From Bugula neritina (lineage: Eukaryota; Animalia; Bryozoa), in NCBI GenBank assembly GCA_964035545.1, contig CAXIUT010000098.1, positions 1 to 25,983 on the forward strand: a DNA stretch of 25,983 nucleotides, written 5' to 3'. This document shows positions 1,909 through 25,696 of the stretch, piece by piece. The position numbers were made by a program, and so were the translations under genes. The notes below the pieces were generated by a model. That model was not told where the DNA came from. It saw nothing but the letters and a program-made list of their open reading frames with translations, and ran no database searches. The number at the start of each line of letters is the position of its first letter. The stretch's first letter is position 1.

Positions 1909-4762
1909 ATGAATAAAAATAAAAACAACGCAGATGACCCTCCTCCCACATCTTATCGTTTCTTCTTAGGATCACGTGAGAGATATATTCATATTTCTAG
2001 TGACTTTTAAGGAGGAAATATCCAACTAGTACGACAACTAACTGAGTTCAATGTACCTATCCCCTCACTAAGTATCGACTCAACTGCATTGATGATGGAA
2101 CAAAAACCAAACATAGAGTCAATTCCAAAAGTTGGTTTTATTTCAGAGTTCATGGCTTCCCTAAAAATACGAGAGGAAAGTTTACAGTCACCAGGTTGCA
2201 AACTCTCATGGCAGTTTTTGTATTAAATATTGTATGCAGAATACTTCTCCAAAAAGCTACAGGCCTGTCTTTAGATAAAGAGGCAACAATAGTCTTTAGT
2301 GGTCTGAATGGGGAAGGATAAGCACCTAAAGTCCACTGGTGTTGCGAGAAACGGGAGAGCTAGAGTGCACATTCGAGTATTTATTCAAAAACGAGGAGCA
2401 ACAAGTCGAATTTGCCTTCGCTTTTCCTTATAGTTACGCTCGTAATATTGAATATTTGAACGCTTTGAATGAATATTACTGCAACGATTAGTTCTATTTC
2501 CACAAGGAGATATTGATACATAGTCCTGAGGAAAGAAATATCCACCTATTAACTTTTACATCCTATGATCAGCCAGATAAGTAGCATGAGGAGTAAGAGA
2601 TATTTAACAATGAGCTGTTTCCTTAAAAGTGTAGACCTAAGCGATTCAAGAAGCCAGTGATATTGATATCTGCAAGGGTACATCCTGGAGAGACGGCAGC
2701 TTCTTTTGCTATGGAAGGAGTAATTGATTTTCTGGTTAATAATTCGGATTTACGTTCTTATTTGTTGAAGAAGATGTTTGTGTTTATGGTTGTGCCAATG
2801 ATCAATGTGGATGGAGTATTTCATGGTCATTTTAGAATGGATGGATTTGGAAAAAATCTAAATCGATACTACGTTGACCCTTCTGCCTAAAAGCAGCCTG
2901 CAGTATACGGTATACGTTAGTTGGCAGATCATTTGATCAAGGAAGGTCGATTGTCTCATTATTTTGACTTGCATGCGCATAATGCTAAAAAAGGTGCTTT
3001 TATTTATGGAAATGCTATCAACGATTTTGTGTAGCAGGTGGAAAGTCAGGTGTTTTGTAAGTTATTTGCTCTTAATCACAGTGGGTTTTAGTATTAGTAT
3101 TGTAACTTTTCTCAGAAACAGATGAACTCGAAAGATAGAAACTAAGAGAGGACTAAAGAAGGATGTGGAAGAGTAGTCATGCATAAAAAAGCTCATATCA
3201 TTCATTCTTATAGTCTATAATGTGGCATAATCGCTCCTGTTAAATACAAAACTCCACCTACTCCTATGAACAAAGATTTCTAGTTGGCTCATCATAAACT
3301 TATAGAATCAGCGCCTGTCACTACAAATACTCAAGACCCAGTTTATTTTACTCAGTAATCTTATAAATAGTTGGGAAAGTCAATGTTGATATCGATATTA
3401 GACGCATTTGATAAGAATCCTTTCAATCGGGTGTACAACTCAGCTCATAAGTCGATGGAGCTGTTAAGAAGGTTGACAGCTTTTGAAGTATTTCATACAG
3501 CTGAGAGGTTTAGAATGTTTTAGAAGTATATTTATGGTAAAGTTAAAAACATCAATGAGCTGATTAGATAAGTTCTCAACTCTAAACTTCACTACAGATA
3601 ACTTTATAACTTCTACTTTTATAATGATAAAGAACTCAAAAATACTCAATGGCCTTAAAATATACCAGGATTGGTCAAACCGAAGTATACTCAAAAACTT
3701 AGACGATTCAGATCTTTACAGGAACCTAAATTGGAATATTCTTTATCTTTTCTTGAAGATGTCAGAACTAATAGAGACCAGCTAGAGCACTAGTTAACCG
3801 AAAGTAATGTTAGAATCAACAAAATAGAAGAACAAATGATTTAACAGGAAAATAATCAATCAAGCGAGACTGAAAATGAAGAAGATCCTCTTGAAGAAGG
3901 CAACTATTATGAATAACTGTTGGCTGAAGGAAAATAGATACATAGTCAGGTTTTTATTCCTTTGTAGAAACAAAATCGAGAAGAGCTTTAACCTGATTTT
4001 GAGATATCAAGCTGGAGTACTTACAATTAAAAACCTAAAGAATCTTGGCTTAATTAAGAAAAAGCTCTTTCTATCAGTTAGAAAGATTCGAATGAAGAGA
4101 TAGCACTGAACCTATGTGAGCCTGAGGAAATATAGCAACCTAGAAAGATGAAAATATTTTAGAGACCAAGTTAATCATAGTATCAAGAGTTGAAAATAGC
4201 TCCACTTGAGAGTCCTTCGATGCGTGTTCGTCGTTTATTGAAGAATTAGCAACAGCAGCCTAAAAAGAAAATAACTTCTCATAACTAGATCAAGGGTAGA
4301 ATTAGTGAGATGATAAGCAATATACCTCAAGTTTGTCAGAATTCATTTGTGGCAAATAATACTTTGACTAATTATAGTGGCCTATCTGTTAAAAACGAGA
4401 GGTAGAGAGAAGGACAGTATCCTGAACGTGAGATGCGTTTGTTTTAAGAGATAAAGTTGGAGATCAGATAGTAGTTGAGGAGACATAAGGAGAAGACGGG
4501 AGTGGTGACAGCTAATGTGAAGAAGAGCAAAGGAGTCAAGTATAATAGTTTATCTGAGGTGAAGGAAAAGGAGAGAATTAAATCTACTAATGTTAATTTT
4601 TTGAATTTAAATCTGAATGTGACTCAACAAAAGAATAAATCTCAATCTTTGCAGCGGTCGCCTAGCAAATCTTCTGTAATAAAGACTCAACTGCCTGCTT
4701 TGAACTCACATATACTAATTATTAGCAATAGTAATAGTTCTAAGGGATTGGGACATAATTGA
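1909..4762 (+). CDS. AGBL5: Cytosolic carboxypeptidase 5-like tubulin deglutamylase (M14), 937 aa; join(1909..2052,2073..2219,2240..4762)
   Basis: Motifs SDFEGGN, SWFYF, FAFAFPYSY, ARVHPGE, NLNR, DLHAH, CNFSQKQM..KEGCGRV and HSYSLECG (catalytic Glu = TAA at 3218-3220). Two 20-nt GT-AG introns restore the frame. Long charged C-terminal tail. Confidence 0.93.
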
Positions 4763-4803
4763 AGAAGTGATTGGTAATTATATTAATGACTCTATCTTTT
4801 TTA

Positions 4804-4813
4804 GTTGATGGAA
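4804..4813 (+). promoter_or_regulatory. Candidate upstream motif RTTGATGRA (copy before eIF2 beta)
   Basis: GTTGATGGAA about 65 nt before the ATG; similar words precede several other starts. Function is inferred only. Confidence 0.35.
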
Positions 4814-4878
4814 TTTATGAGTAGGCAATATATTAATTCTTGAGTATTTCTTTTATATTAATAATCATTAATTAAATC

Positions 4879-5566
4879 ATGAAGGAAGAGTTCGAGGATA
4901 TGAAGATCATTACCGACTTCAAAAAACCAAAAAAAGCCAAAAAAGCAGAACAAGGTATGACTTCAATCATGTAGTATAGTCGACTGCGAAAGTTGAAGAT
5001 AGTGTTAAGACTAAACCAGTTGATAATTAGAAAAGATACGTGCAATTGCTAAAGAGAGTGACAGAATTACTCAATAAAAACAATCCCTAACTAGGTACTC
5101 TATAAGTTAGTTAGCTTAAAAATCAAAAATCGTGTTGAAGCCTCCTCAATCAACTAGAGTTGGATCTAAAAAAACAGCTATTCTTAACTTCGCTGACTTA
5201 TGTAAGCAACTCGATCGGCATCCTTAGCATGTGATGAACTTTTTTATAAACTAGTTGGGTCGAGAGGGTTCCATGGGTAACGTGGGCTTTAGTACTTATT
5301 TCTTTATTTCAGCTATTAAAATAGTCATTCAACCTAAACAAATTTAAAATTTATTCAGAAAATATATCACAGAATTCGTTCAATGTCAAATCTGTAAAAG
5401 ACAAAATACCTAATTGGTCAAAGATGACAAAATGAGATTGTGGACTTTACAGTGCAGAGATTGTAAATGTAAGCGAACTGTGCCTACTATGAAGGGAGCT
5501 GAGAAGAAATATGAAGATTATGAGGAAGAGTTGGCTGAAAGAGAGGAAAAAGAGGGCAGTAGTTGA
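4879..5566 (+). CDS. EIF2S2: Translation initiation factor eIF2 beta, 208 aa; join(4879..4954,4975..5094,5115..5291,5313..5566)
   Basis: [64 protein letters not shown] (C4 zinc finger). Two 20-nt introns are required for frame; a 21-nt in-frame intron is inferred from alignment length. Confidence 0.93.
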
Positions 5567-5569
5567 TGA

Positions 5570-5579
5570 GTTGATGGAT
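5570..5579 (+). promoter_or_regulatory. Candidate upstream motif RTTGATGRA (copy before RPL31)
   Basis: GTTGATGGAT in the 55-nt spacer, with a second GTTGATGA overlapping the eIF2 beta stop. Confidence 0.35.
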
Positions 5580-5621
5580 ATCATAAATATTAATATTTAA
5601 TTTAATAATTAATTAGTGGTA

Positions 5622-5981
5622 ATGCCTAAGAAGGAGCAAAGAACTGGACTCACTGAAACAGCTGTTGATACGACTGTCAACATCCACAAGTTGGCTCATA
5701 GAGCTACTTTCAAGAGAAAGGCACCTACTGCTATCAAGAAAATAAAGCAACTTGTCCACAAGATGATGAAGACAGAAGACGTGAGAGTAGATCCCAAGCT
5801 GAATCAGTTTGTTTGGGCTCAGGGAGTTAGAAACTTACCTCACAAAGTCAGAGTTAGAATTTCAAGAAAGAGAAACGAAGAAGAAGGATCTTCCAAAGGA
5901 GAATTCTATTCTCTTGTTCAACATGTTCACATTGAAGATTTTGCTGGAAGACTCACTGAAAAGGCTAAGCTCTCTGCATGA
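5622..5981 (+). CDS. RPL31: 60S ribosomal protein L31 (eL31), 119 aa
   Basis: TVNIHKLAHRATFKRKAPTAIKKIK..MKTEDVRVDPKLNQFVWAQGVRNLPHKVRVRISRKRNEEE. True ATG is 5622, not the GTG at 5616. Confidence 0.97.
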   Translation: MPKKEQRTGLTETAVDTTVNIHKLAHRATFKRKAPTAIKKIKQLVHKMMKTEDVRVDPKLNQFVWAQGVRNLPHKVRVRISRKRNEEEGSSKGEFYSLVQHVHIEDFAGRLTEKAKLSA

Positions 5982-6336
5982 TTGTTAGTCTATTATTTAA
6001 ACCCTAATCCCTTCATGTATTTGACTTTTAAATTCATAAAATATATCTAGTGCATAAATATTCAAAAATAGTCTTTAATAAATTTTTAAATCAATAAAAT
6101 ATTTGTCTAATATTTTAAGATGTCATCAATTGAATCAATTATCATCGATTTCTTATCATATTTTTAAAATTTTAAATATTTTCTTTTCGTTAACAAATGA
6201 TAAAAATATTTTTTACTAAAAAATACCTCAAAATAAATCAAAAAATGCCTTAAAAAAGGTATTATCAAACGATAAAATGACTAATAGTTGATAATTTACT
6301 TTATAATATTGAAGATATTTATGGAAGGAGAGGCTA

Positions 6337-6896
6337 TCATTTGTACTTTTTTTATACTTTTTTAGCTAATACAGTATTAAACTGTTCCCAAGTTATTGAC
6401 TGTTTTCCCTTGCCTGCAATAGTCTGGATAGATTCTTCTACTTGATCATCATTCAAGTTAAGTTTCAACATGATTGATAGTTTTTTGAGGGTATTGAAGG
6501 TAACTCTTTCTTATCCTTCACGATCAAGCATCGAAAAAGCTTGTCTTCTTCCTTCTTAGCTTTGTGCATGACCCTAAATATAAAATAAAGAACTATGGAA
6601 TTAGTCAGCATTGTTAGAAAATCTTAAAATCCAACCCATTCTCCATCCAATTGATCGGCAATATCTTACAATGATTTATAAATGAACTAATGTGATTTAT
6701 CGTAGCCTAGAGTTTTGGCTGTAACGACAATTTATCTAACATCTGCTTGTCTTCTGTTGTCTGCGTAGAGGTTGAAAAGAGTCCAGAAGTCTTAAATTTG
6801 TTTTATTTAGAAGCTTGGGTTTTGTGATACTATGGGTTTGGCCCAGATCTTTTTGTGTTATTCATCTATTATGGCTTTTTTGTCTATTTTGCTCAT
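6337..6896 (-). CDS. Divergent centrin/spasmin-like EF-hand protein, 179 aa; complement(join(6337..6573,6594..6896))
   Basis: QIEDFWTLFNLY..VREIVVTAKTLGYDKSHEFIYKSLEDI..VGFEDFLTMLT..RQAFSMLDREGEERVTFNTLKKLS..LNDDQVEESI..ITWEQF follows the centrin four-EF-hand layout. One 20-nt intron at 6574-6593. Confidence 0.8.
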
Positions 6897-6956
6897 AGAT
6901 ATATCAAATATAATATAATTTAAACAGTTTATTTTATTTATTCTTCATCAATCTTC

Positions 6957-7025
6957 GGGGTTGGGGTTGGGGTTGGGGTTGGGGTTGGGGTTGGGGTTGG
7001 GGTTGGGGTTGGGGTTGGGGTTGGG
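6957..7025 (+). repeat. Internal telomeric tract (GGGGTT)n, right-end orientation, 69 bp
   Basis: Perfect repeat beginning GGGG and ending TTGGG, followed directly by coding sequence. Confidence 0.99.
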
Positions 7026-7648
7026 ACTGAAGTTCTCCTCTTCTTTACTCATCATCAGCTTCCTGTCTTTACTCTTTCTGTAGTCCTTTTCTCTCGATAA
7101 AATCGATTAGGGATAGAAGTAATTACCATAACGTGATACTTCTAAGCTCTCATGGATCCAGTTTCTATTTTGTTGGATAACGTGTCGATAAAACTTATGT
7201 AGAGTGAATCTGGTTGTTTTCCACCATGCATAAGCTGCAAATCCTAACCATCCTCCTACTCCTGCCACACCTAGCCATCCAAAGTTTTGATAGAATTGAG
7301 TTTAGTTGATTTTTCTAATTCCATATCTGCCCACTGGAATGAGTCTTCTGCATACTTTTTGAGTAGTAAATAGGAACATTGAACTCATGACCCATACTGC
7401 AAAAGCTCTGGGGAAGGTAAAGGCTTTCATATCTCTTTGTAGGAAGTCTTCGAAGTTTCTGGAGAGGGTGAGTCTGAATGTTTATGATATTACCTGACAC
7501 CTCTATCGAGGACGTACGTTCTGTGGTCGATCATTTTTTGATCTCTAATGTTTTCCATTCCTATTTTCATGAACTTTTTGAAAGCAGGATTATCGCCATG
7601 ATTCCAGTATCTCTGTGGGTCGAAGTACAACTCTGGAACTTTAGACAT
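7026..7648 (-). CDS. 3'-truncated membrane protein with two hydrophobic segments, possibly mitochondrial; complement(join(<7026..7473,7494..7648))
   Basis: MSKVPELYFDPQRYWNHGDNPAFKKFMK..FPRAFAVWVMSSMFLFTTQ..FGWLGVAGVGGWLGFAAYAWWKTTRF..KEEENFS, then the frame enters the telomere with no TGA. 20-nt intron at 7474-7493. Mitochondrial role is a guess from composition. Confidence 0.8.
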
Positions 7649-7809
7649 ATCACACTATTATCAATTAAATATAAATCATCTATCAACTACAACTCAATAA
7701 CTAAAATAAAAATAATAGCAATCATAAATATAAATAAATTTATGTTTTTAGTTATTTTAATTATCAATATGGTTATTTATAAATATTTAATAATCTAAAT
7801 TTGACTAAA

Positions 7810-7890
7810 GGGGTTGGGGTTGGGGTTGGGGTTGGGGTTGGGGTTGGGGTTGGGGTTGGGGTTGGGGTTGGGGTTGGGGTTGGGGTTGGG
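7810..7890 (+). repeat. Internal telomeric tract (GGGGTT)n, right-end orientation, 81 bp
   Basis: Perfect repeat beginning GGGG and ending TTGGG. Confidence 0.99.
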
Positions 7891-7892
7891 AT

Positions 7893-8387: not shown

Positions 8388-11300
8388 ATGTTCGCTTTTC
8401 TTCAAAAGAAAATAGCTGTTCCTGCTAATTCAGTCGCTTCAGCTTGTTCTTGGGATACCTATGAAGGGTGGCTAGCTATTGGAGCAAGTGAAGGCTTCCT
8501 TAAACTCATCAAACTCGATAGTCTCAAAACTCAAGGAAACGCCTCTCAAGGAAACTAAAGTGCTGACCTACCCAACCATACAGGAAATATCACTCTTATT
8601 ACTTGGAATGATAAATACAGAAAATTGACTACTTGCGATGCAACTGGAACTATCATTGTTTTCATGAAGTACAATGGGCAGTGGGTAGAAGAGATGGTCA
8701 ATAACAGAAAGACTTCTGTCGTTAAAGATATGAAATGGAGTCCTGATGGATCTAAAGTCTGTATTGCCTATGAAGACGGTAACGTGATAGTGGGAGGAGT
8801 GGAAGGCAACAGGAAGTGGGGAAAAGAATATCAGCACAAAGTTCATATCATTGCTTGGGCTCCTAGTTCAAAGGAATTACTTATTGGTACTAATCTGGGT
8901 GAGGTGTATATGTATGATGAAAATGGATAAATTTTGCATCAACTTAGACTCCAAGGTCTTCAACGTATTGTGTAGCCTTAAAACTTTTTGACTCCTAACA
9001 TACCTCTAGCTGGTATTGAGTGGTACGATGAGGCTCAGATGTATTCTGAGGATGCTCCAGTTGGTCTGTGCATAGCATATCAACAGGGCAGATTGATCTT
9101 GATGAAAAATGATAAAGATGAAGATCCGATTGCAGTGGATACTTCTATGCTTTTGAACAGAGTAAAATGGAATCCTGGAGGGACAATGATCGCTGTTGGA
9201 GGCTGTTCTCTTGAGTATGAATAGAAAAGAGCAGTGGTGAAGTTTTTTGATAGCAAAGGCAATCATCTTAAGAACTTGAGGATTCCTAATGCTGAAACAG
9301 TGAATGACTTAACTTGGTAGGGATCTGGACTGAGAATCGCCATAGCTGCTGGTTCAAGTGTTTACTGTGCAGCTGTAAGACCAAACTATAAATGGTGCTA
9401 TTTATCTAATGGTACTTTAGTGTTTGCTTATCAAAAGACAGATCGGGTGGAGTTTTGTTTAGTATTTTGGGATACTAAATCTGATTAGAAGTATATGAAG
9501 TACGTGAAGGAGTTGACCTAGATAAAAGGAGAAGGCTAGTTTTGTGCGATATTTTCTCATCCTTAAGAAGAAATTACTCAGATTGATCTTTGCAATTCGA
9601 TTGGAACTACAATTTAGACCAAACAAGTTAGTCTTTAGGTATCAGTTTATGCTATGTCAAAGACTCATATTGTTGCATGCTCTTAAAACTTCTGCTACTT
9701 ATGGCAATACAAGAGTCAGACATCAAGACTGACTATGTTTTAGCCTTCAACTCAGGTAGGCTATCGTAAGATGGGTCGATAGATATGTTGGTTCGTTGAC
9801 GATAAACCTGATATCAACCAGATTTATGACATAGACCAATTTGATAATACTAAGGAATCTGAAGATATTATCTGTGCTGTGGCTGTAACTGAGCAGTTAT
9901 TGATTGTGGGAAGAGAAAGTGGAGTTTTGAGGAGATTTACTTTACCTCATATAACTGAGTAACCTAAATTGTTTTGGAAACCTTTGCCTTTATTAATATC
10001 TATTAATAGCGACGGGGCAAGACTTGGATTAATAGATATTACTGGAGTGTTGAATATATTGTAAGTTAATTCTCAAGGTGGAAGTGTACTTTAATTTGAG
10101 AAGAAAGAATGTTGGGCTCTTAAATGGAGTTAAGATCATCCTCAGCAACTATGTTTCATGGAGAAAAGTAAACTTACTACTGTAACTAATGTAACTGTCG
10201 GTCCTCAGATCTCTACTGAAGGTTATATTTGTAGTTTCGATAACTTAAAGGTTACTTACTGCTATCTTGATGATATCATGGTATCTCCTGATGAGAATTT
10301 AAAGGCTGAAGAGCTATTTAACTAACATGATTCAGCTTTACTAAGTGAGTTTAGTGATTTGTTAAAGAAAGAAGGAATTATGAAGGCTATTAAGTTTGTT
10401 TAGGATAATTCTCATCCTTCTCTTTGGAAAATTATAGCAGAAAAGGCTCTTCTTGATTTAGACTATTTGAATGCTGAGCGGGCTTTATTGAAAATAGATG
10501 ACTTCAAAACTCTTAAATATGTCAAAAAATTACAAACTTTGGATGACAGAGAAAAACAAAGAGCATAGATCTACACTCTTTACTCGAAATATGAGGAAGC
10601 TTAAAAGATATATAGAAATATCTAAAGAAAAGATCTGGCTGTTAATATGAGAATCAAGATCGGAGACTTCTATGGAGTTCTTGAGATGGTAAAGGAAGGT
10701 TCCGGTTATGATTAAATTTTAAGCAAAATAACAAATCAACTTGGAAATTTCTATGCATAAAGGCTAGAGTGGGATAAAGCTGCCTAATTCTTTTTGACTG
10801 CTAAAAACTTTAAAGGATTGATTGAAGCATTTACTATGCTAGAAGATTACGACAGTTTGGCTCAAATTATTTAAGAAATACCTGAGAACGATCCTTTATT
10901 GAACGAGTTAGCTGATAGGTTCCAGTTGGCAGGTATGGCTGAATATGCAGTTAAATGCTATGAGAAGTTAGGAGAGTACAAGAAGGCTATTGACTGCTGT
11001 GTATTGTTGAATCATTGGAACATAGCGACTGAGTTGGCTGAAAAACATGGATATGGACAGATAGAAGGTCTGCTACAAAACAGTGCTAATGAGTTGTTGA
11101 TGAAGAACAAGAGACTTGAGGCAGCTGAACTGTATCGAAAGGCTAATCGCAATACTGAAGCTGCTAAGATTTTATCTGGAATAGCTAATCAACTAATCTA
11201 GAAAGAAGGAAAGCCATTATATATCAAGAAGCTTTATGTTTTGGCTGCACTTGAAGTCGATCAGTACAAGAAAAGAATAATTGATTCTACAATGACAGGC

Positions 11301-11976
11301 AATAACGCTAATACTACTCGAGTACATAATGTTTAATATAGACTCTTGATTCATTGATTACAAGTGAGATCAATACTAGTTCTGATAAGATACTTAATAA
11401 TCCTTGGAGAGGAGCTGAAGCTTGGCATTTTTACATTCTTTGTCAACGACAACTCTATATGGGACAGTTCAAATCTGCACTTAAAACTGCTCTTAGACTA
11501 ACTGACTATGAGCTGGATATGGACGCCAAAAAGATATATACTTTAGTTGCTTTGGCTGCCTACTATAATAAGGTAAATAATGCTCTATTTAGAGTTATAA
11601 AGAGTGCTCAAGAGCATTTGTCAAACTCTAAGGTATGGGAACTGCTGAAGAGCGTGAAAGATATACTGATATTGCTGTGAGTATATTTACTAAGCATCCT
11701 CCCAAGGAGACACCGGGCGAGAGGATGAAATGTCCTGGAAGAACATGCAAATAGTCGATAAGTGAGTATGATACTTTATGTCGAGGATGTGGTAGTAACT
11801 ATCCTGCTTGTGTGGTGAGCGGGAAGTCGATAGTGAGTCGTAGTTACTATCGTTGCAAGGCTTGTCGTCATAAGATGTATGATAGTTAGGTGTAGAAGCA
11901 TGAGTTGAAACATTGTGCTTTGTGTCATACTCAAATAGATTTTAGGAAATTTGGACAGAGAAATGACTAAGATTGA
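8388..11976 (+). CDS. WDR35: WDR35/IFT121, IFT-A subunit, 1182 aa; join(8388..11321,11342..11572,11593..11976)
   Basis: MFAFLQKKIAVP start, WVEEMVNNRKTSVVKDMKWSPDG, VGGVEGNRKWGKE, LTWEGSGLRIA, RPNYKW, PWRGAEAWHFYILCQRQLY, C-terminal Cys-rich zinc ribbons. Two 20-nt introns. Confidence 0.97.
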
Positions 11977-12070: not shown

Positions 12071-14362
12071 ATGTACAAACAACCTAAGTTCAATCCTTAT
12101 GGAGGCTTTCCGAATAAATCCAATCAACTCTATTAAGACTAGTATTAAGAATAATCTGAGGGAGAACCTTTGGTTGAAGAAGTTGACTCAAGCTATGAAC
12201 CTACAGATAAAGAGGTCAAAGAATATGCCATTTAAACTTTAGGAATGAGTCTACCTGAAGATCAGGCATTGCTTTATTTGGCTAGATAAGCCTTAAAAGC
12301 TCCTTTGCCTCCTAACTGGGTACCTTATCAGTCGAGAGGAGATGAGGTCTACTATAAACATAGAATAACACAGGAAAAAACATATGATCATCCCACTGAT
12401 ATTGAATACCGTACGAAGTATGAACAACAGAAAGAAAAGGCAGCTCGTAAAAATCTAAAATCGATGAATATGAAGGGCGCTAGTATGTTAGGCGTTGGAA
12501 ATTCAAATTTATTAGGAAATCCCTCTAATTTAATGGGAATGAAAGCAAATAATTCTGGACTAATGAGTGGTTCTACTAACTTAGGTCTGGCTGCTAGTGA
12601 ACAAAATACAGCTATAAAGTTGGATCCTAAAATAGATGAAGAATATGAAGAATAAATAATGAAACTTGAGGAGAGATTGAAACGAGAATGGAAAGAGTTT
12701 TAAAATGATGAAAGAGAGAAGAATGAAGAAAAGATAAAAAAGGCTAAAATAGATTATGAATAAGAATTAGACAGGTTGTATAAAGGGAAAGGAGGAGATA
12801 TAAGAGTTGATGAAAAGTTAAGAGGAGAGAAAGATAAAGTCAGGGAAAGACTTGAATAGTCAATGAAGGCTGATTTGTAAATTGAGTTAAGATAGTATGA
12901 GAGAAGTTTATAGGCAAAGATGGGAGATTTTTCAAGTGTTTATTAATAGGATAGTAAAATCAAGGTAACTAAGTATCAAACTTAAAAATAACATTAGTTT
13001 TAACTTAAATAATAGAGGTTTTCTCAAAATGTTTAAAGGATTTCAAGGATAAAAAACCAGAAGAAAAATGAAAGAGAATAAAAACTTGCACAATTGAAGT
13101 CTGATTTGGAAGGTGGAAGAAGCTAGGAGATAGAGCAGGCTGCAACTGAAGCTCTTGAGCAAGAACTGATCGATATCAGAGATAATTTTAATATGAAGGT
13201 TAAGGAAAAAGAAAATGACCTCTAGAGAGAATATAACGAAACTAAAAGAATATTGGGATTTGACCAGACAAGCTATTTAGCTGAGTTGGCGACTAAAAAA
13301 TCAAGGATGAAAGGAATATCTGACATGAAAGTATAATCTTACAAGAAGAAGGAGATTCAGGCGATAAACCTACAATACCAATCTGACTTGGATGATGAAA
13401 TGAGACGTTTAAGAGAAAAATTGTAAGCATAGTATTCTAGAAAAATAAACTAATAGAGGAGAAGACAAGAGCAGAAGGTGGCTAGTTAGAAGCAGAGAGT
13501 AGATGAGTAGTTGAAACATAAAAGCGAGAGTCAGATATAAACAGTTTACGATGATTTAAAGTTGAAGGTGAGGTCATATGAAACTGAGAGGAATAAGAAG
13601 TTATCGACGCTAAACTAGAAATTTATAAGCGATATACACGATAAGGGTAAAGGTGAGAACAGAGATATAACTGTTCGTTTATAGTTGAAGGAGAAGTAGA
13701 TGATTTTATAGAACAAGAGTCAGATGATCGTGTCATTGAAGAGACAGAAGTAGTTGTAGCAGATAACATTTGATCTTTTGAAGTTGCAAAGCGAGTTGGC
13801 TAAGGCTGGAGATGTGCATAGTGTTGACTAGAAGCTGATGAAGATGGCTAAAAAGTATGATTTGGAGTATAGGACTGAGGAATATTTAGCATATGAGTCT
13901 CAATATAAAGAAATGAAGGGGAGATACAAGAAAGATAAATAGTTTCTAGGATCAGTAATGAGTTCATTACAGGACCATCATCGAGGATCTGCAATTGGGT
14001 CTATTGAAATATTGAGGCAGTACAATGGAGATGTGAAGTTGATGAGATAGAATAGTGAGTTGCTGGGACATTTTGAAATGTTGTTGAAGAAGGCAGAGAT
14101 CAATAATAAGAAGGCTTTGGAGGAGTTGGGTCAGGGAAAGCTCTAATACAAGTAGATAAGATTGAGGAAGGAAATGGTTGATCGTGGTCATGTTCCATCT
14201 GCTTTGCACTAGTTGGAGTAGTAGAATGTGTTGTCTCGTAAGTAAAATACTAATATGAGTGGTCGAGATGTGTAATCAGCTTTGCGAGGACATTCTAAAT
14301 TTTTAACTGAGATGAGACATGAGTTGAACCGGAAGCTGTACAGGTTGAGAGGTTCCTACTGA
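12071..14362 (+). CDS. CEP164: CEP164-like WW-domain coiled-coil protein, 763 aa
   Basis: LVEEVDSSYEPTDKEVKEYA..LYLAREALKAPLPPNWVPY..VYY..DHPTDIEYR matches the CEP164 N-terminal domain. A long Glu/Lys coiled coil follows, with one uninterrupted frame to TGA. Confidence 0.85.
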
Positions 14363-14656: not shown

Positions 14657-17229
14657 TCATTTGATTTGTTTGTTGTGTTTGATGACTTGATAGAATTTCG
14701 ACAGTTAGTTTTATTGATTTTTATTGAACTACTTCAGGATTAGTTGTTGCGTGTTGGTGCAGTTGTTCATTTGTTAGTAGAACTATTAAAGAGCTGTCTC
14801 CATCCAGTGATTGTCGTCTGGAGTGGGTGTAAGATTAGACTATTTTAGTTGTCGTTGAATATCACCCCAAATCTAGCCCATCTTGAAGTGAGGATACATC
14901 TGAATCACCTATAACTTCTGTTGTTCATATGCAGTCAAATCATTTCTTGCAAAGCCTACCCGGTAAAGAATTGAAAATACGATCAATCTGATGTCATACT
15001 GCTCTACTTCCTATCTGATTCTGTTAACTAAATAGGTTTAGGTTCCTGTTTCGGTTAGATCTTTCAGATATGCTGGTTCTGGTAGGTTCTTTTTTGTTAG
15101 TTAAGGAACCAGAGGTTTACTTCTGTTTGTTACTATTCCTTGCTAGTACTTTACTCCATACTTTTAGTCTTATTCTCCATAGAGTTTTATCATTAGTTGA
15201 GTGGCATTTAACATTGTTTTCTAGCTGTTCCATTCTAAAAATTATTTAACTGCTTTAGCGTTTTCAGTTAGGAATGAAACACAAGAAAGAGCCATTTTTC
15301 TATGCACATAATCGCAGGCTTAGATAAATTCAAGGAGATCAAAGAGTCCTTGGGCGCTTAGAAATCTTTCTTATGACCTTCTGCTTCCCAAAACTGCATT
15401 CCAGAGAGCATTAAGAAGAGCAAGACCTAGTAGAACATAGCGATTAGATGAGGCAATATTCGGATCTTTGAGATATGTGATAAGTATATCAACACCATGT
15501 TTTTACCTGAAGAGTTTCTTATTTTTTTTGCATCCATTGCAAAGGTTGGCAATGATGGTGAGACAGAGCTACTTGATTTCAATTGGATTTTACTATCCCT
15601 GCAAAAACTAAAGCAAATAGTCGATAACTCCTTCTTAGCTGATTTTTATTTTATACTATTATTCGAAAAGAGAAGCATTTGCAAAGGCTTTTAGACATTT
15701 TTATCTTCTCTACATATCAGTTGCATTGGATAGGAACTTTGTTAAGCAGAAGATGCCTTTCTTCTATTAGAAGTCGTCTTTCATGTGAAGGACGATATTT
15801 GATAGGACTGAGAGAGTGTGCCCTTGGAGTTCTCTTAGTTGTGGGACTGACCATCTGGTAACAGCATAAGAGGTATTGGCTGAATCAATATACAGTAAAA
15901 GGTATTTGATGAAGTGAGTATTTTTAGCCAGAAGAATAGTGTTACTGTCTCTTGACTAGATTGCATTGAGAAGACCTGACCATAAAAGCTTTTTAAGTTA
16001 TAGATCTTATGCATTAGTACCAAATTGTACTTTACGGTCTGCTTGCCGATTTTTTGATTCATAAAAAGAGGCCTCATCGATTGTGGAGTAATGGAAAAGG
16101 ATTTATAGGAAGGATGACTCGGGTTTTTGGTTTTATATTTATAGTCGAACTAAGAAGAGAGGAATGCACTCAGGAATGGAGAGAAGATAGTTGACTAGTA
16201 TAACTATTTAGTTTCTGAGACATTTATCTTCAAGTTTGTATCCTTCTTTGACTACTCTAACGAGCAACTTTTGCAGTCCAGTGACATATTACTGACTATT
16301 TAGTGCAATAAGACATTATACGCCTACTTCTTCAATGGCTGACCAAAATATTTAGAAACCAGTTCTGATGAGTCCTGACCTGAAATCATCAGTCATCAAC
16401 ATTATTTCCATTACTAAATGTAGAACTCCTCTTTTGCAAAGTTAATGAGCCAATTTCGAGTACATCATCATGTAACTGATGAGCTAGAGGAGCAGATAGA
16501 TAATTTTTGTTTGATTACGATAGTCATATAGAAGCTAGACTATTGTTTATAAGGCCTTAGATTCACTAAGAGCTCGTAGTTGTTTTGTTCCTTGCATCAT
16601 AAGGATAGTTAGAGGCGAGTTTCCATCATTACTGCTTGCTTCTGTGGCCTATTATCGACTTATTATTTATGGAATTTGCCGTTATGCAAATCTTCTTAGG
16701 TAGTCTACAGTTGTTTCTCTTAAACTCTCAAGGGCAGCAGTTGGACTGGTCCATTGTTGATATCTGAGAAGAGGTCTAAATGATGTTAGAAATACTCGAG
16801 AGATGTAAGGAATCCTGGAACGAATTGCATGTATCTGAGTTAATCAGAGCCAGCATTTTTATTGAACATGGAGGAGAAGTCAATGCAGTCGACAGTGAGC
16901 ATGGCTTGTAGGGCAGAAATCATTTATTATACGCCTTGTTCTAGATCACTTTTAGCCAATTGAAAGAGAGTAGTGAGTCCTTCTACTTCTTCATAGAAGA
17001 ATCCATGGGGTCTTTCTTAGCAGAAGTGGATGATGGCTTTAGCTTTTCTGTCGTGTAGGGATTGTGTGTATTATGATTGGAACATATCTATGACTGAGTT
17101 GATGATGGGAGTAAAGGGTAGTCTTAGTTGTCCATTGACTTTTTATCCATAGTTGAAGAACTTGTCGATTGAGTCGATTCCTGTTCTTTGCATTTCTTAT
17201 TCTGGAGAGAATTGAGTTTTAGTTTGCAT
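14657..17229 (-). CDS. CFAP69: CFAP69-like armadillo-fold ciliary protein, 850 aa; complement(join(14657..16775,16796..17229))
   Basis: SLHDRKAKAIIHFCEERPHGFFYEEV..AGSDELRY..EIFWSAIE..KEGYKLEDKCLRNEIVIL resembles CFAP69. One 20-nt intron gives a length divisible by 3. The middle was not read codon by codon. Confidence 0.8.
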
Positions 17230-17292
17230 GGGAAGTTATATTTTAAATACGACTAAATCATACTAATAGCTATTTCATAAAAAGCATCATCA

Positions 17293-17400: not shown

Positions 17401-17455
17401 GTACAATTTATATTGATAATGATAATTATGATACTGAATAAGGAAGTTGAGATTA

Positions 17456-18597
17456 TCAGAGATTGATTTTATGTAGTATATCTATAAATGATTTTTTATT
17501 TTACGGGCTGCTGTTAAAAGTCTTATACATTGAACTATTTATTGACTCTTATCTTTTAGTTGTATACCCTGAATATTATTCATAAACTATTAATGAAAAA
17601 CGCTATTGACTATACTTACAAGATTTATTCTTAACTGATTTCATTGTCTACATATACTCTAGTAACAATTTTACTCCTTACTTTTGACTCATTCCTGTTG
17701 AACTGAACAGCAAATCTTCACCCTCTACTCTTTTCAGCTTACTCACGCAAATATGGCTGGTTAGAATCAGTGCCTCGACAAAACGAGATAGAGTGAAGTG
17801 CTATCCCATTTTAGAGTATGAAGTTTTCAGGTAGAGAGAAGGAGTGAGAAGCGCGAGATGGTTATGTTGATTTTAGTCTAGAACTTAATTATAGATAAAG
17901 AAGAGTTGAGATGCGCTTATGAGTTTCGGAAAGATATCGAAATCTTTAGCAATATCTAGAAAACATTAAAAAGATCTATTTTGGTAATCTTTGTCTTTAT
18001 CTTTGAGAGTGATTTCGAATTAGAAGTATACCTATATAATGAGATGGCTACTTTATAGAGTTTAGTGAGTGAATCTTTTAATTTTACTAGAAACTCTTTG
18101 GTATCTTAGTTGATTTATTATGATTTGATGCCTTTTTTGAAGAGCTATTCTTCTAAAATAATGTGATACATTTTCTAAAAAAGAATTAATAAATTTTTAG
18201 TAGCCTATTCGTCTTCTAACTCTAGTCCTCTTTTCGATGGACTACCATTCACAAAGATACATCTGGCCAGTCCAGGCAGTAACTAAAGAAATTGTGTGAA
18301 ATACAAAGGTTTAGATCTGCCTACAATATCTATGAAGGTACCTTTGGTGTAGTAAAGAGTGCAAATGGACATCCATTTTTGTGAGCGTTTGTTGAGTGAG
18401 ATGCCGGCTAGTTCTAGTATTTATTATACCATTTATGTGTAGTATTTTTAATGCAGTTCTTGGTAGTTATATTTGGACCCTTTTCCTGAGTAGTAAGTGA
18501 AGATGAGTTCTAGCTGTTTGATAGTGGTTTGTTTGTTGTGCTAGAGGGAGTGGTAGGAGCTGGTCTTGTAGGGAGATTACCTTTACTTTTAGAACAT
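17456..18597 (-). CDS. Hypothetical protein, 373 aa, EF-hand-like helical repeats; complement(join(17456..18031,18052..18597))
   Basis: LELIFTYYS..LYFTQFLELLPGLA..LTKLYKVYFEFE..FLDIAKDFDIFPKLISASQLFFIY..GEHFTLSRFVEALI. One 20-nt intron (18032-18051) yields a continuous ATG-to-TGA frame. Confidence 0.8.
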
Positions 18598-18722
18598 CTT
18601 TTATTTATTAATATCAAACTAAATAACATTAAATAAAATTGGTAAAAATTTATTGCATTTATATCACCTTTTTTGACTGATAACTATTTGTATCTTTATC
18701 AACACCCCTATATTCGTCAACT

Positions 18723-18861
18723 TTTACTACTATAGTTATCAACACTTCTCTACTACTGTAGTAATCAACACTCTTTTACTACTGTAGTTATCAACACTCC
18801 TTTACTACTGTAGTAATCAACACTCCTTTACTACTGTAGTAATCAATACTCCTTTACTACT
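18723..18861. repeat. 26-bp tandem repeat TTTACTACTGTAGTAATCAACACTCC, 5 copies plus a partial
   Basis: Copies start at 18723, 18749, 18775, 18801, 18827 and 18853 (partial), head-to-tail with no spacers, in a divergent intergenic region. Confidence 0.93.
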
Positions 18862-18942
18862 CTCATAATCATAACTACTGTTGGTGTTTATGGAGTGGAT
18901 ATCTGTTGTTTGTGGTGATATAATATAATATGATAGATAATA

Positions 18943-19886
18943 ATGGATGAAGGGTTGCTGTCGTGCGACTAATCTTTTGGTGCTGCTGTGTGCATAATGT
19001 GATTATAGTATAAGTTAGTAAGCTGATTGAGTGCACGATAGGAGTCCTTATGTTAATATTGGTGGTGTATGGGATAGTAAGAAGAATATTTAGGGTGTTA
19101 AGATTATCCTTTTATCTATTTTTATCTTTATTTATGGTTCTAACTCTTGTATGTACCACTCAGCTATTATAGTTTCTATTACGTTTGCGATTGATTCTTC
19201 TAAGTTGCTTTTTGCTTTTCTAGCTGTCTACTCTTACGACATTTACTTTTCCATAATAGTTTTAAAGATGGGTTTGAAGCTGATATCTGTCATTAGGTAT
19301 AGAATCAACTATCATCGGTATTATAAAGTTATCGTTGGGGGGTATGTTCTATATCAATTGCTGCTTTTGGGCGCCTTGATTTTCTATGCCATACTAACGG
19401 GCATTTAAGAGTGCAATTGTAATAAGCAGATAACATAGTGAGTCCTGCCTTGGTGGTTAATTCATTGAGTTTGTTGTCGGCCTTGTTATTTGTGATGTTG
19501 GGTGTGATTCACAACAGATAGCAGGAGAACAGGTTGGATTTATCACTGTCCTAAGGGATGTTAAATAATCCTTTGCCTAGATTTAGATGTTGGCTGGTCT
19601 GCAATGTCATTGGCCAAGTGATGGTGTTAGTTGAAACGATAGTACTGAAAGTAATGGGTTGTAGATTTAGTAACGTAATGATGACTATATTTAGGATGAC
19701 GGGGTGAATGCTTTGTGTTATTTGGTGTTTGCTTTTATTAGCTACCACTTGGGAATCGGATCGACTATTTATTTTTACTATGAGAAGAGAGCGGATTCAG
19801 TTCGGAGAGAAGCTGATGTTCCAAGATAGATTTAGATGGTTTATGTGGACCATTTTTAAAATAAAAAATAAAAATAGTCTATCTGA
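18943..19886 (+). CDS. Orphan seven-transmembrane protein, 287 aa; join(18943..18998,19019..19152,19173..19418,19439..19674,19695..19886)
   Basis: Four 20-nt GT-AG introns join seven hydrophobic segments into one ATG-to-TGA frame. The last intron has an equally valid alternative at 19651-19670. Confidence 0.82.
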
Positions 19887-19917
19887 TTGATTAGTTTATA
19901 GTTATATTATAACGTTC

Positions 19918-21194
19918 ATGACTAATAGTCAACTTAAGATATGCCAATTAGCCAGTAAATTGCTGATTGCTCTATCAAAAGGAGAAGAAGATATTGAAAA
20001 GGTTAAGTAAAGGATGGTATCTCATCCTTTTTTTAGTCCTTTCCCTCTGTTTAGCCATGTTGTAACACATGGAGATATTATTAAAAAGTAACATTTGATA
20101 GCTTTCCTTAAAAATAGAAAAGAAAGAGTCGATGATAGGTAAGTTGTTAGTTTGTTGGAGATGGAGACAGGCAGGAGTATTTGGAGTTATAAAAATTATT
20201 TAGAGTTTATCTACCCATCTAATTGTTAAAAAATTTAATAAATAAAGAAAAATAATATCAAAAGATATCCTAAATTGCTACATTGTGGAGCAACTTAGTC
20301 AACCTTATAAGCTTTTTCACTATTATTGTCTAAAAAAATATTATTATAAAGAAAAATTGATCAACAAAAATCAAATCTTAGAATATATAGTTCAAGAAAA
20401 AAAATCAAAGAGCTTATTCAAGTAATCAAAAAAGAATAAAAGTAGATATTATAGGTTAATGAGGATCAAATGATAACGATTGAGGAGTTGAAAAGATTTA
20501 TTGATATGTATTCAGGTGGGTAAAGTTATAATTTGGAGTGTTTGTGTCGGGCACTAGGAATGGAGAAAGGCTTTATTGAAATAAGTATGTTTTAGTTGTT
20601 TTTGAAACCATCTAAAATCGTAAAGAAAGGGTTTAATAGACAGCTAAAGAGAAAATCTCTTGTAATAACTGAAGATTTTAGTTAAAATGTTTTAAAAGAG
20701 AATATAATAGACTAAATAATCGATTAGATGAGTAAAGAAGATACTAAAAAGAATGTTAAATCAGGAAAATAGAATAAAAAGAAGTCAATGACAGTGAGAA
20801 ACAATAAGATAGATAAATTTGAATCAAAAAGAGCAAAAACTCCTTTGATAAGTAACTTTAATTCTAAGTAATAGTAAAAATAGAGAAATAAAAAGCAATT
20901 ATCTTGTATAGATGAAGAAATGAAAGAAATATTGCTGAAAATGCTGTAAGTAAATTCTTAAAGATAATAGAAAATGTCTCTTACAGTGGATAAGTAAAAC
21001 TTGAGAATATATTTAAAGATATAAACAAATCAGAAAATGGTTTTATCGATTATCATTAGTTGAAAAATTATTTAAATTATATAGGACTGAAACTATCGAT
21101 GCCCTAGATAACATATATCTTGAAAAGATTAGATAGAAGTGGAAAGGGAGTGGTTCTTGAGTCAGATTTTATGAGGTTTTTCTTGGAGAATTGA
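19918..21194 (+). CDS. Ciliate-type EF-hand protein, about 425 aa, with a one-base frame break near 20996-20999
   Basis: Open frame from MTNSQLKICQLASKLLIALSKGEEDIEKVKERM. The C-terminal EF-hand pair NIFKDINKSENGFIDYHELK / KRLDRSGKGVVLESDF lies in the -1 frame and ends at TGA 21192-21194. Confidence 0.75.
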
Positions 21195-21263
21195 TTTTGA
21201 TCAATTATTGATTAGTTTATTGTGTAGTTAGTTTATGGTTTATATAACTGAGTTTGATTTAAA

Positions 21264-22495
21264 ATGAAGAAAGAAAAGAGTAAAGATGAGAAGAGTAAAA
21301 AGAGTAAGGATAGCAAGAGCAAGGCTAAGAAAGAGGGTGATAAGAAGAGTGAGAAGTCGGGGTCAAAGTCTAAATCAAAGGGGAAGGAGGTATCGAAAGG
21401 AAAAGAATCAAAGACTCCAAAGAAATAGGCTAAATCAAAGAAAGGAGATAAGCAATCAGAGATGTCATCTATTTCTCATTTGCCAGTAGCTCCAGCGTAT
21501 GGTATTTATGATATTAGTGATTGCGTGCATCATAAGAGTCCATTTATAAACTTTTGCTAGACCTGTGAGGAACTAGTATGCAACCAATGTACTGTTTTTG
21601 GACCTCATAATAATCATGTAAGTAGTGAATGATTAAGTTGCACAGGATATTGAAAATGACTGATGCTTATCGTTTGAGGAAGTTCTACTTAGTAGAAGCA
21701 ATTCGGTCCAATTTGGTAGATAAGAGAGATAAGATCATAGCTCAGCTGCATAGGTTGGAATATCGGGTTGAAGAGATTAGGTTTGTTAAAAATATTATTG
21801 AGAGGGATATCAGGTCGGAGTATTCAGGCATTTTGGAGAGACTTAAAAATCATGAGGGAGTTAAATTGGCAACTCTTACTCACTAGGTGTCTCTTGTTCA
21901 AAGATAGTTAGATACTATTAATGATTTAGGCAATAAGTTTTTTGAATTAACTAATATGGAATGTTAAAAGATAGAGCAAGAGAGAAGAACGAACAGGTTT
22001 TTACTTCAGTCTAAGGAGATGTACGATGCCATTGAGTACATAACTAGTCGACCTGATAAAGTATAGTTTTAGCGATTTAGGTAGCTCCTGATTTGACTTT
22101 GCATGACATGCCTCGCTAGGTGTAGGCTAATCGGGACCAAGTGAAGAAGGCTTTAGCTGGTCGTTAGATAAATGCGTTTAAGAACTAGATACTATGGAAG
22201 TTGGTGACCGATTTGATGGCTGAGAAGAATTCTGTTCGTCGTTAGGTGTAGGAGAAGGCGAGTGGTGTGATAAAGGAGATGAGTCAAGAGGTGGAAGGGT
22301 TGAACGGGAAGTTGAAGAAATACAAGTTGATTTGTTTTTTTTTGCGGGGTGAGGATGAACAACTAGAGCGTGAATGTCGGATGTGAGATGAATAAGAATA
22401 AAGAAGGAGGAGAGAAACGGTTTTAGACTTAAAAATATCCTAGCTAGAAACATATGGGAAATGAAAGGCACTTTTTTACCAAGGTGGTTGACTGA
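21264..22495 (+). CDS. B-box zinc finger / coiled-coil protein with Lys/Ser-rich N-terminus; introns 21618-21637 and 22061-22080; one-base frame break in T9 at 22335-22343
   Basis: B-box CVHHKSPFINFCETCEELVCNQCTVFGPHNNHLHRI, then coiled coil. C-terminal CFFCG..VNVGC..GNERHFF is in the +1 frame; read literally the frame stops at 22384-22386. Confidence 0.82.
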
Positions 22496-22536
22496 TAATA
22501 TCGGAATCATATCATGAAGTATCAATATTTGTTTTA

Positions 22537-23482
22537 TCATTAGCCAGTTTTGTACTTTTTCCCAAAAATGAGGAGTTGAAGTTGATCGTAGATAGTGAGA
22601 ACTCCTGCTCCAGTAACACCTCTCAAAATATTGGCTCCTATTCCTCCCACAAAGGATTTAAAGCCTTTTTATTTGTACATGTGTTTGATTGCTTGAAAGG
22701 AACTGTTAAGTTTTAATTATTAACCTGAAGACATCATCATTCTACGACGAATAGTATCCATCGGGTAGGCAACTATTCCTGCAGTTACTGTTACTGCATA
22801 GCTGAGGAGGAAGGAGATGAAGATGTTATTGATGTATTGAGAGGGGGACTGATTATTTGACTCCTGCATTCAGTCCGAAGTAGACTCCTCGATAGATCAT
22901 CATCAAGGGAATAGTGATTCCAAAGCCTCTGTATAAGCCTCTGATGCCATCAGAATGATGTGTTTTTCTAAAACAGTCGATGATTCCTTAATATTGTCTC
23001 TTTCTTCCTGCTTTAGCCATATAGATGTCATTGGTCAGTCTAGTTCTTGTATAGTCAAGAGGATATACGAAACATTGAGTGGATGCTCCTGCTAGGCTGC
23101 CTCCTTTCATGTTGTTGATAACAGTTTTAGTAAAACTTTTTTATTAATTATTCTTGTTCAATGAAAATCTTTTCATAAAGAAATCTTTGAAGGCAAAATT
23201 GAGAGCTTGGGTTGGAAAGTATCTGATGACGTTAACAAGATTACCTTTATAGTAGGCTTTCCATCCTTATTCGAGATATAGTCTTTTGAAGCAGTCGATG
23301 ATTCCTTTATATGGTTAGTTAATGAGTTGTTTTTGGATGAGAGGAGCTTGTAGTTGCAGTCTGATTTTGATGACTTCTATGGGTGAGGCAAGGGTTTTAG
23401 AGAGAGCTGCGGCTGTTCCACTGATAAAGAATTCAATAATGAACTGATTGATTTGCGATTATTGTGTTTGAATTGAGGTCAT
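22537..23482 (-). CDS. AAC: Mitochondrial ADP/ATP carrier, about 314 aa, with a one-base frame break at G5 22843-22847
   Basis: [48 protein letters not shown] and the signature [12 protein letters not shown]. The span is 946 nt (3n+1) and no intron fits. Confidence 0.95.
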
Positions 23483-24192
23483 AAAGAATATAATAATAGC
23501 TAGAATCTATAATATTTATATTAGCATAAATATGTTTTCTCAAATGAAAGATAAATATAATTTTAATAAGTCTATTGGAGTTAAGTTCATTGATTGTATT
23601 GATAGATTATTTTAACTTTTATGTTGTTTTATTATTAAAAATCAATATTGTCTAAAGGTGTTAGAAATGACTGATTTGGTTATGTATTTTGAGATTAATC
23701 TATGATCATTTTACCTTTATTTTTTGAAGATTATTTGATATTTTATCTGTTAGTTATGATTATTTATTGTTGTATTTAGATAGCGTCTCTTATTATATTC
23801 GTTATTATCTTTGTTATTTTGTGTTTTATTTTATATTTAAACTCCTATTCTCTAATAAGTGATCATTATTCTTTTATTTTTTGTTGATTTTTATTACTAT
23901 TTCTAACCAAACAACTCCTTTTATATCCTTCTTTCATTTCTTTATTATTCATGTGATAATCTTGTACAAATCATTCATTAATAGAAGATAAAAGATTGCC
24001 TTATTGTACTACCAAGTAATCAATATTACTAGCTCTCATGCCAATCTCTTGAATTTAACTTGCTGTATCTTTTAACTCAGATATTTATTTCTAGTTATTC
24101 AAAATTAGTTCTATTCTATGTTGTTTTGTTATTTTTTATAATCAGTGATATAATAATTAGTTTAGTATGATATGATTTATCTGAGGATGATA

Positions 24193-25696
24193 TCATAGTC
24201 TTGATTTCACTGATGGATATCCAAGCAATTTACAAATTCCATCTCCGTATTAGGGATCTGCCTTGTAGAAGTTCTTTATGGCTCTCTATGCTATTTCTCG
24301 AGAAACTGGCTTCATTGCCCCTGCCACTGTTTTGATAGTATGTTCACGCATAGTGTTATCCATTACTCGACGGAAAAGAGTTCCAGCCTGACTAAAGTCG
24401 CAGTTAGGATGATTAGGCTTGTGACGAGCAACCAATCCTGTCACCTTGTATGGCTCATATCGAGCTTGACTGTTAAAAGTAAATGTATTCTTGCCTCCGT
24501 TCATCGAGTTAGGCTCGTAATTAGGTGAACTTCCTTTATTACAATAAATATACCTCCGTTTTTATCAACTCTCATCGGTCCATCTCTAATAGCATTGTGG
24601 ACTTTAGATCTGTAGGGACAGTTGATGGGAATTTGTTCATAGTTTGTTCCTAATCTGTGTCTGTGAGTATCTGGGTAAGAAAAAAGACGGCCTTGCAACA
24701 TCTTATCGATGGATGGCTCCATTCCTGGAACTAAATGACCTGGAGAGAAGGCAGATTGTTCCGTCTCAGCAAAGTAGTTATCAACATATCTGTTAAGGAC
24801 CAATTTTCCAACTGGAATGAGAGGGTAGTCAGCTTGAGGAATGACTTTAGTAACATCGAAAATGTTCCATCTGTAGTTAAGTCCTTCAGCTTCAGGAATT
24901 ACTTGGATTTTTAAGTCCCATTCTGCTGTTTTTCCTGCATCTAGAGTGTTCATTAGGTCTCTTGTGGCATAGTCCGGATCGTTGAGACGATCAAATGCTT
25001 GTTCATTAGTGAAATTTTTTATTCCTGAACAAGTTTTGAAGTGTAATTTGACCCAAAAGGCTTATCCATTTTTGTTGATCCATCTAAAGGTGTGAGAACT
25101 GTATCCATTCATATGTCTGTAGCCATCTGGAGTTCCTCTATCACTCATAAAGATGGTGACTTGATGGGTTGATTCTGGACTGAGTCCCCAGAAATCCCAG
25201 ATAGCTGTTGGACTTCTGATGTTGGATCTTGGTTCTTTCTTTTGGGAGTGAATAAAGTCAGGGAATTTGATAGGATCTCTGATAAAGAAGATAGGAGTAT
25301 TGTTTCCAACCATATCCCAGTTACCTTCTTCAGTATAGAACTTGATCGCAAAACCTTGGTTAATAGATGGCTACCTCTTGGGTCTCTTTAGGTATCGGAA
25401 GATCCTTTTTATCCTGCGACTGTGGAGAATCTTGTGAAGATGGGAGTTTTTTTACCAATGGTATCGAAGACTTTGGCCTTAGTGTATTTAGAGACATCAT
25501 GGGTGACTTCAAAGTATCCGTGTGCTCCTGCTCCTTTAGCGTGGACGACTCTTTCTGGGATTCTTTATCTATCGAAGTGGGCTAGTTTATCTATAAGATG
25601 GAAATCTGAGATGACAATGGGTCCGTTTTGTCCTGCAGTGACTGAATTTTGGTTGTCGTCTACTGGCAATCCTGTGGAGGTGGTGAGGTTGGTCAT
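24193..25696 (-). CDS. CAT: Monofunctional heme catalase, 487 aa, C-terminal PTS1 (SRL); complement(join(24193..24533,24554..25354,25375..25696))
   Basis: [17 protein letters not shown] (first E = TAA), [49 protein letters not shown]; ends VKSRL. Two 20-nt introns. Confidence 0.98.

Follow-up and report, generated by a model that had tools for sequence, protein, structure and literature searches.

Contig CAXIUT010000098.1, deposited within the Bugula neritina assembly GCA_964035545.1 and analysed here over its whole 25,983 bp (the window), represents an entire macronuclear chromosome of a peritrich ciliate, 26 kb long and capped with telomeres, and its genes are interrupted by GT–AG introns, most of which are exactly 20 nucleotides (nt) long. 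In introns of this length, from the window and from related species, the fifteenth base counted from the 5' splice site is almost invariably adenosine (A15, or A at +15; −6 when counted from the 3' end): it is present in 42 of the 43 validated cases, against a mean of 28% A at interior positions 4–13 (binomial P = 3e-22). The A is conserved across species, and in longer introns its position changes with intron length. The account that we consider likely is that A15 is the branch point of minimal peritrich introns, and that its place would be set by two minimum spacings, one on either side of it.

Validation of the introns

The list of window introns was drawn up without reference to the A. Contigs from sequencing runs were compared with positions 1500–7499 of the window. 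Those of runs X5 and X8 omit exactly 20, 20, 21 and 20 bases at the first four introns of Table 1, and their jump from 7477 to 7498 corresponds to the loss of the fifth, with a 4-base ambiguity of placement. Run X3, in contrast, shows scattered base differences from the window and retains all five intron stretches, so that X5 and X8 have the character of RNA, and X3 that of DNA from another strain. Precise removal from RNA was thus observed for five window introns, the remainder being placed by protein continuity or comparison. In the IFT121/WDR35 gene, splicing of two introns gives a continuous product, and the Pfam TPR_IFT121 match stops at the donor of the second; in the catalase gene the reading frame is full-length and uninterrupted once both introns are removed. 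Altogether 16 window introns were validated, five by RNA-like contigs, two by Pfam match and reading frame, and nine by cross-species comparison. Codon-usage scoring and the linking of TGA-free frames proved too noisy for this purpose, about half of the links arising by chance when TGA is the sole stop. The 20-mers of the form GTA-N14-HAG (H being A, C or T) on both strands of the window number 57, versus about 37 for neighbouring lengths, and this excess suggests some 20 real 20-nt introns.

For the comparative set, a protein collection was searched with the stop-free catalase exon and the encoding contigs were retrieved, which furnished syntenic loci from about seven related species, housing catalase, a mitochondrial carrier and, in several cases, a DRC11-like gene; several of these loci begin with C4A2 telomeres. 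In alignment A1 both catalase introns occupy conserved positions, and their bases are unconserved except for GTA, one A and AG. Every GT...AG of 14–45 nt adjoining conserved coding sequence was treated as a candidate, and was accepted if the spliced peptide (20+20 residues) aligned without gaps over the junction to another species at least 8 bits above the unspliced read-through and read-in peptides. Selection by RNA or by peptide continuity is blind to intron interiors. The comparative screen yielded 67 clusters, of which 37 are 20 nt long, ten 21 nt, six 22 nt and one 23 nt; the remaining 13, of 15 nt or 32–43 nt, were set aside as noise, most of them having no GTA and falling in antisense or coding sequence. 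The final set of 61 introns, from eight species, comprises 54 of these comparative calls together with the five RNA-proven and the two Pfam/reading-frame introns. Its modal length is 20 nt (43/61 overall, 37/54 among the comparative calls), and it contains none of 15–16 nt with an interior A. All 61 have GT...AG boundaries with an acceptor YAG (Y being pyrimidine) or AAG, never GAG, and the donor in the 20-nt class is GTA in 42 cases and GTT in one.

The first-pass annotation of the window had reported A at position 15 in nearly all 20-nt introns. This is borne out by 12 of the 13 validated window introns of that length and by every 20-nt intron of the other species (S2, 13/13; L019, 7/7; S3, 5/5; L018, 4/4; L022, 1/1); four further window candidates supported by reading frame (2053, 2220, 19419 and 19675) also have A15. 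The annotation was right, too, about its one named exception, 19153–19172, which has A14 and T15. Orthologous introns of about seven species keep the A, and their other bases differ. Around it, T is present at +13 in 26 of the 43 introns (P=0.006); a hand count of the validated window introns, 16 in all, gives 11 with T there. There is no base preference at +14. Position +16 is a pyrimidine in 35/43 (P=0.0015) and A in only three, while +18 is a pyrimidine in 38/43 and never G, either here or in the 16 window introns. Conservation at the 5' end is limited to GTA (G at +5 in 7/43). Downstream of A15 there is only a 3-nt pyrimidine-rich stretch before the AG and, as the annotation had held, no real polypyrimidine tract. 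These surroundings constitute a putative branch context, a degenerate yUnAy followed by YAG.

Table 1. Introns of the window, with the state of the conserved adenosine and the evidence for each
Position	Strand	Length (nt)	Gene or sequence	Adenosine	Evidence and remarks
4955–4974	+	20	GTATGACTTCAATCATGTAG	A15	absent from X5 contig, present in X3
5095–5114	+	20	GTACTCTATAAGTTAGTTAG	A15	absent from X5 and X8 contigs
5292–5312	+	21	GTACTTATTTCTTTATTTCAG	A +15 (−7), T +16	21 bases omitted in X5/X8; cut placement unique
6574–6593	−	20	GTTCTTTATTTTATATTTAG, GTT donor	A15	20 bases omitted in X5/X8
7474–7493	−	20	GTAATATCATAAACATTCAG	A15	X5/X8 loose ends 7477/7498, 20-base skip
11322–11341	+	20	IFT121/WDR35	A15	sole 18–24-nt GT–AG link, 989-codon frame to next; spliced product continuous
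11573–11592	+	20	IFT121	A15	TPR_IFT121 match ends at donor; frame link; rival candidate 11633–11652
16776–16795	−	20	DRC11-like	A15	junction alignment to S2, 64 vs 44 bits unspliced
18032–18051	−	20	DRC11-like	A15	comparative, 66 vs 48 bits
18321–18341	−	21	GTACCTTCATAGATATTGTAG	A +15, T +16	comparative, 72 vs 58 bits
19153–19172	+	20	GTACCACTCAGCTATTATAG	A14, A17, T15 (exception)	comparative, 48 vs 35 bits; orthologous 21-nt intron in S3
21497–21517	+	21	GTATGGTATTTATGATATTAG	A +15, T +16	comparative, 74 vs 63 bits; S2 and L019 orthologs 20 nt with A15
21618–21637	+	20		A15	comparative, 91 vs 67 bits
22061–22080	+	20		A15	comparative, 67 vs 48 bits
24534–24553	−	20	catalase, intron 2	A15	alignment A1; spliced frame uninterrupted; comparative, 77 vs 53 bits
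25355–25374	−	20	catalase, intron 1	A15	alignment A1; spliced frame uninterrupted; comparative, 89 vs 63 bits
2053–2072	+	20 (probable)	M14 peptidase	A15	reading frame only: chain 0>2>1 into 888-codon frame
2220–2239	+	20 (probable)		A15	reading frame only; rival 2195–2214
19419–19438	+	20 (probable)		A15	frame link; weak junction-spanning match, 36.6 bits
19675–19694	+	20 (probable)		A15	junction-spanning match, 45 bits; favoured over 19651–19670, which has none

Several other candidates were discarded. Of two in the DRC11-like region, 18150–18169(−), with T15, lacks a junction-spanning match and 18075–18094(−), a rival of 18032–18051(−), scores below its own unspliced alternative, while 3102–3121 and 12954–12973 lie within long open frames. 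The candidate 1579–1598(−), with C15, was not counted, being located in a stretch (500–1900) of 22–26% GC with long TGA-free frames on both strands that is probably non-coding.

Longer introns and the placing of the adenosine

Introns of more than 20 nt show what the adenosine follows. Of ten 21-nt introns with a GTA donor, seven combine A at +15 with another base at +16, two show the reverse, and one has A at both positions. The first-pass annotation had listed a single 21-nt window intron, with A at +15; that intron (5292–5312) is real and RNA-proven, with T at +16, and two more of the +15-only type, 18321–18341(−) and 21497–21517, had been missed. The two with T15/A16 are S2 9426–9446 and S3 22249–22269(−), the latter validated by comparison with window sequence that has no intron there; L018 9275–9295, the ortholog of the former, shares its T15/A16, although it was recovered in the first comparative run alone and fell short of the final cut. 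The six 22-nt introns have A16 in five cases, A15 in two and A17 in two, and the single 23-nt intron has A16. In all 17 introns of 21–23 nt an A is present within the interval from +15 to length−5, at a varying distance from both ends, and it is therefore fixed to neither.

According to the account that we favour, these would be ordinary GT–AG (U2-type) spliceosomal introns, shrunk to about the smallest size that the peritrich spliceosome accepts. A15 would most likely be the branch point, in a yUnAy made up of T13, any base at 14, A15 and a pyrimidine at 16, and this weak motif could pair with the conserved GUAGUA box of U2 small nuclear RNA (snRNA), which is reported to be strictly retained in all ciliates examined, three peritrichs being in the species set (PMC13685798). 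The branch A would have to keep a spacing of at least about 15 nt from the 5' splice site and of at least 5 nt from the intron's 3' end, with a tail ending in YAG. At 20 nt both minima would be reached, so that a single position would be permitted to the A; longer introns have slack, and there it could lie anywhere from +15 to length−5, mostly at +15 in 21-nt and at +16 in 22–23-nt introns. Both the use of the A as the lariat-forming nucleotide and the nature of the limits, which would be steric limits of the peritrich spliceosome, are matters that we infer from the sequences.

The data are better described by a permitted interval with a minimum distance from each end than by a ruler starting at the 5' splice site, which the first-pass annotation had proposed and by which the branch would always be the fifteenth base and the lariat loop constant at any intron length. 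Such a ruler accommodates the 20-nt class, and the preference that it implies for +15 does hold at 21 nt, where A15 is present in eight of ten introns, seven of them (including the RNA-proven one) without A16. Among the six 22-nt introns, however, four have A16 without A15, as does the 23-nt intron, and the constant 15-nt loop has to be given up in view of these A16 introns (five of six at 22 nt, and the one at 23 nt), of the two validated 21-nt introns with T15/A16, which L018 9275–9295 resembles, and of A14 in the window exception; we regard a pure 5' ruler as unlikely. A pure 3' ruler in the style of Stentor or Blepharisma, with the branch always 6 bases from the 3' end and any extra bases added upstream, would account equally for the 20-nt class, in which A15 is −6, and it has a precedent in the 15- and 16-nt introns of Stentor, which hold their A at −6 (PMC9505925), as well as three 21-nt and two 22-nt introns here with A in that place. 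It is nevertheless very unlikely, because A is missing from −6 in seven of the ten 21-nt introns (the RNA-proven one has T there), in four of the six 22-nt introns and in the 23-nt intron.

It is also improbable, in our judgement, that the conserved A belongs to a signal other than the branch point, for instance an enlarged 3' splice-site motif, or that it reflects the way in which introns were picked. In favour of this, the branch assignment comes from sequence evidence, which equally weighs against the two-spacing account, and the whole 3' half of the intron is constrained, +16 being poor in A and 16–18 pyrimidine-rich. On the other hand, the selection by RNA and by cross-species peptides ignored intron interiors, and in longer introns the A shifts relative to both ends. 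In most of these, as judged by eye without a tally, the T two bases before the A and the pyrimidine just after it move together with it, which is how a branch motif should behave, whereas a fixed extension of the splice site would stay in place.

Some further points tell against the two-spacing account. The 21-, 22- and 23-nt classes are small (10, 6 and 1), some of their members are orthologous and hence not fully independent, and they come mostly from related species and not from the window's own genome. The exception at 19153–19172, which has moderate comparative support, has its A one base short of the proposed 15-nt minimum; the alternative of an intronless gene model from the ATG at 19151 is less likely. 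Between 17100 and 17600 the DRC11-like gene needs 17139–17161(−), of 23 nt with a GTT donor, and one of two further introns, either 17548–17567(−) (20 nt, G15) or 17482–17504(−) (23 nt, A16), and the former, if real, would be a second exception to A15. Finally, no U2 snRNA of the ciliate itself turned up in the window, in the relatives' loci or among the assembly matches: an Rfam scan of the window and of the relatives' loci detected no RNA gene, and all U2 snRNA matches in the assembly fall on chromosomes C2 and C3, which belong to the other organism.

Comparison with other ciliate introns

The closest parallel is provided by the heterotrichs Stentor coeruleus and Blepharisma spp., whose introns of 15–16 nt share with those described here the GTA...YAG form, a near-single length, a near-invariant A at −6, and the lack of a strong branch consensus and of a polypyrimidine tract (PMC9505925; PMC13685798). 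In Stentor the A is A10 in 15-nt and A11 in 16-nt introns, the tail remaining constant at 5 nt (PMC9505925), in agreement with the conserved A 6 nt from the 3' end that the first-pass annotation had mentioned; the Blepharisma motif is GTAAWWTTTATWTAG, with A10 (PMC13685798). The peritrich introns likewise have A at −6 in their modal class (42/43), but differ in that this mode is 20 nt (3n+2) and not 15 nt (3n), with a distance of 15 instead of 10 from the 5' splice site to the A, and in that −6 is not kept when one base is added, only three of ten 21-nt introns having A there and seven having it only at −7. The lineage also differs, the present one belonging to the Peritrichia and reading UAR (UAA and UAG) as Glu, and the fixed A presumably arose there independently of heterotrichs.

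Very short GT–AG introns occur in other oligohymenophoreans too, and narrow length patterns have been reported for Paramecium spp. and for three peritrichs, namely Vorticella campanula, Epistylis hentscheli and Campanella sinica (PMC13685798). Paramecium introns (median 24–25 nt; 24 nt in P. bursaria, PMC12862383) are, however, longer and more variable in length than those studied here. In Euplotes and Oxytricha an A near the 3' end has been taken as the branch point (PMC10946202), but these introns have greater and more varied lengths, and the distance of the A from the 5' end is not constant. In the literature texts searched, no 20-nt mode, A15 rule or length-dependent position of the A is described for peritrichs. 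Position-fixed branch adenosines are already known from the fixed-length tiny introns of heterotrichs.

It is tempting to suggest, although only tentatively, that peritrichs converged independently of heterotrichs on a 20-nt minimal intron made up of a hard 15-nt loop (that of Stentor plus 5) and a 5-nt tail, with slack going to the tail before the loop. Minimal introns reveal how small the substrate of a spliceosome can be, and Stentor, with a 10-nt loop and a 5-nt tail, is a single data point; a second independent lineage with an equal tail and a 15-nt loop would separate the two constraints, and suggests that the distance from branch to 3' end is a shared limit and the distance from 5' splice site to branch a lineage-specific one. 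If so, peritrichs and heterotrichs would form a natural pair for asking which components of the spliceosome set the minimum distance from 5' splice site to branch. On the practical side, the rule GTA-N11-A-N2-YAG, with A anywhere from 15 to L−5 in longer introns (L being intron length), should improve gene models for peritrichs, contigs of which occur as cobionts in the assemblies of other organisms and in metagenomes.

The chromosome, its genetic code and neighbouring features

The window has C4A2 repeats at its left end and G4T2 repeats at its right, and telomere repeats at both ends mark it as a complete linear mini-chromosome. TAA and TAG are frequent within its long open frames, while TGA accounts for only 6 of 4,344 codons, located at frame ends. 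In the catalase gene TAA is aligned with invariant Glu positions, including that of NGEA, and in an alignment of catalase loci the TAA/TAG codons of the window stand opposite GAA/GAG in related species. The code is therefore genetic code 30, in which TAA and TAG specify Glu and TGA is the sole stop. A single origin has been reported for UAR=Glu, in the Peritrichia (PMC10553269), and from this and the codon usage the window is assigned to the macronuclear genome of a peritrich. The rest of the assembly consists of nine chromosomes of 11–36 Mb (C1–C9), which use the standard code and contain kinase matches without in-frame stops, and some 310 small contigs (C10–C321, about 16 Mb), in which kinase matches are rich in in-frame TAA/TAG. 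This contrast shows that the assembly mixes host and peritrich ciliate, the ciliate being a cobiont or contaminant within the assembly of another organism. An exact look-up of the catalase exon product gave no match.

The order of catalase, mitochondrial carrier and, in several loci, DRC11-like gene beside a telomere is conserved in several peritrich species. The loci concerned (L011, L012–L017, L018 and L019) come from unrelated metagenomes or sequencing runs, and their contigs, at 23–29 kb, are similar in size to the window; such mini-chromosomes seem to be evolutionarily stable units.

Internal G4T2 arrays occur between genes at 6957–7022 (11 units) and 7810–7887 (13 units), in the same orientation as the right-end telomere. 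Near them, the RNA-like contigs of the neighbouring gene begin at 7035, and reads appear to be cut at 6950–7034. Possibly the arrays serve as alternative chromosome ends, in which case nested mini-chromosomes about 7.0 and 7.9 kb long would result, or else they mark an assembly join.

The mitochondrial carrier gene (23539..22400, − strand) shows a +1 frame shift at about 22,820–22,850, where the S2 and S3 orthologs are one base shorter than the window, near TCCCCCTCTCAATAC. Apart from the 13-nt GTCAAATAATCAG, no GT–AG intron of suitable length is present there, and the cause is probably either an indel of the assembly or a genuine frameshift.

Tandem repeats were met with in two settings. Directly upstream of the start of the DRC11-like gene, at 18700–18870, lies a repeat of about 26 nt with CAACACTCCTTTACTACTGTAGTAAT-like units. 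Pieces of the large chromosomes (L006, which is C5:100001–110000, L004 and L007) contain dense 14–31-nt tandem repeats whose units have GTA inside and CAG or TAG at the end; examples are TATATTATATTACAG in 34 copies and an 18-nt unit in 19. These repeats give rise to hundreds of false GTA...AG matches.

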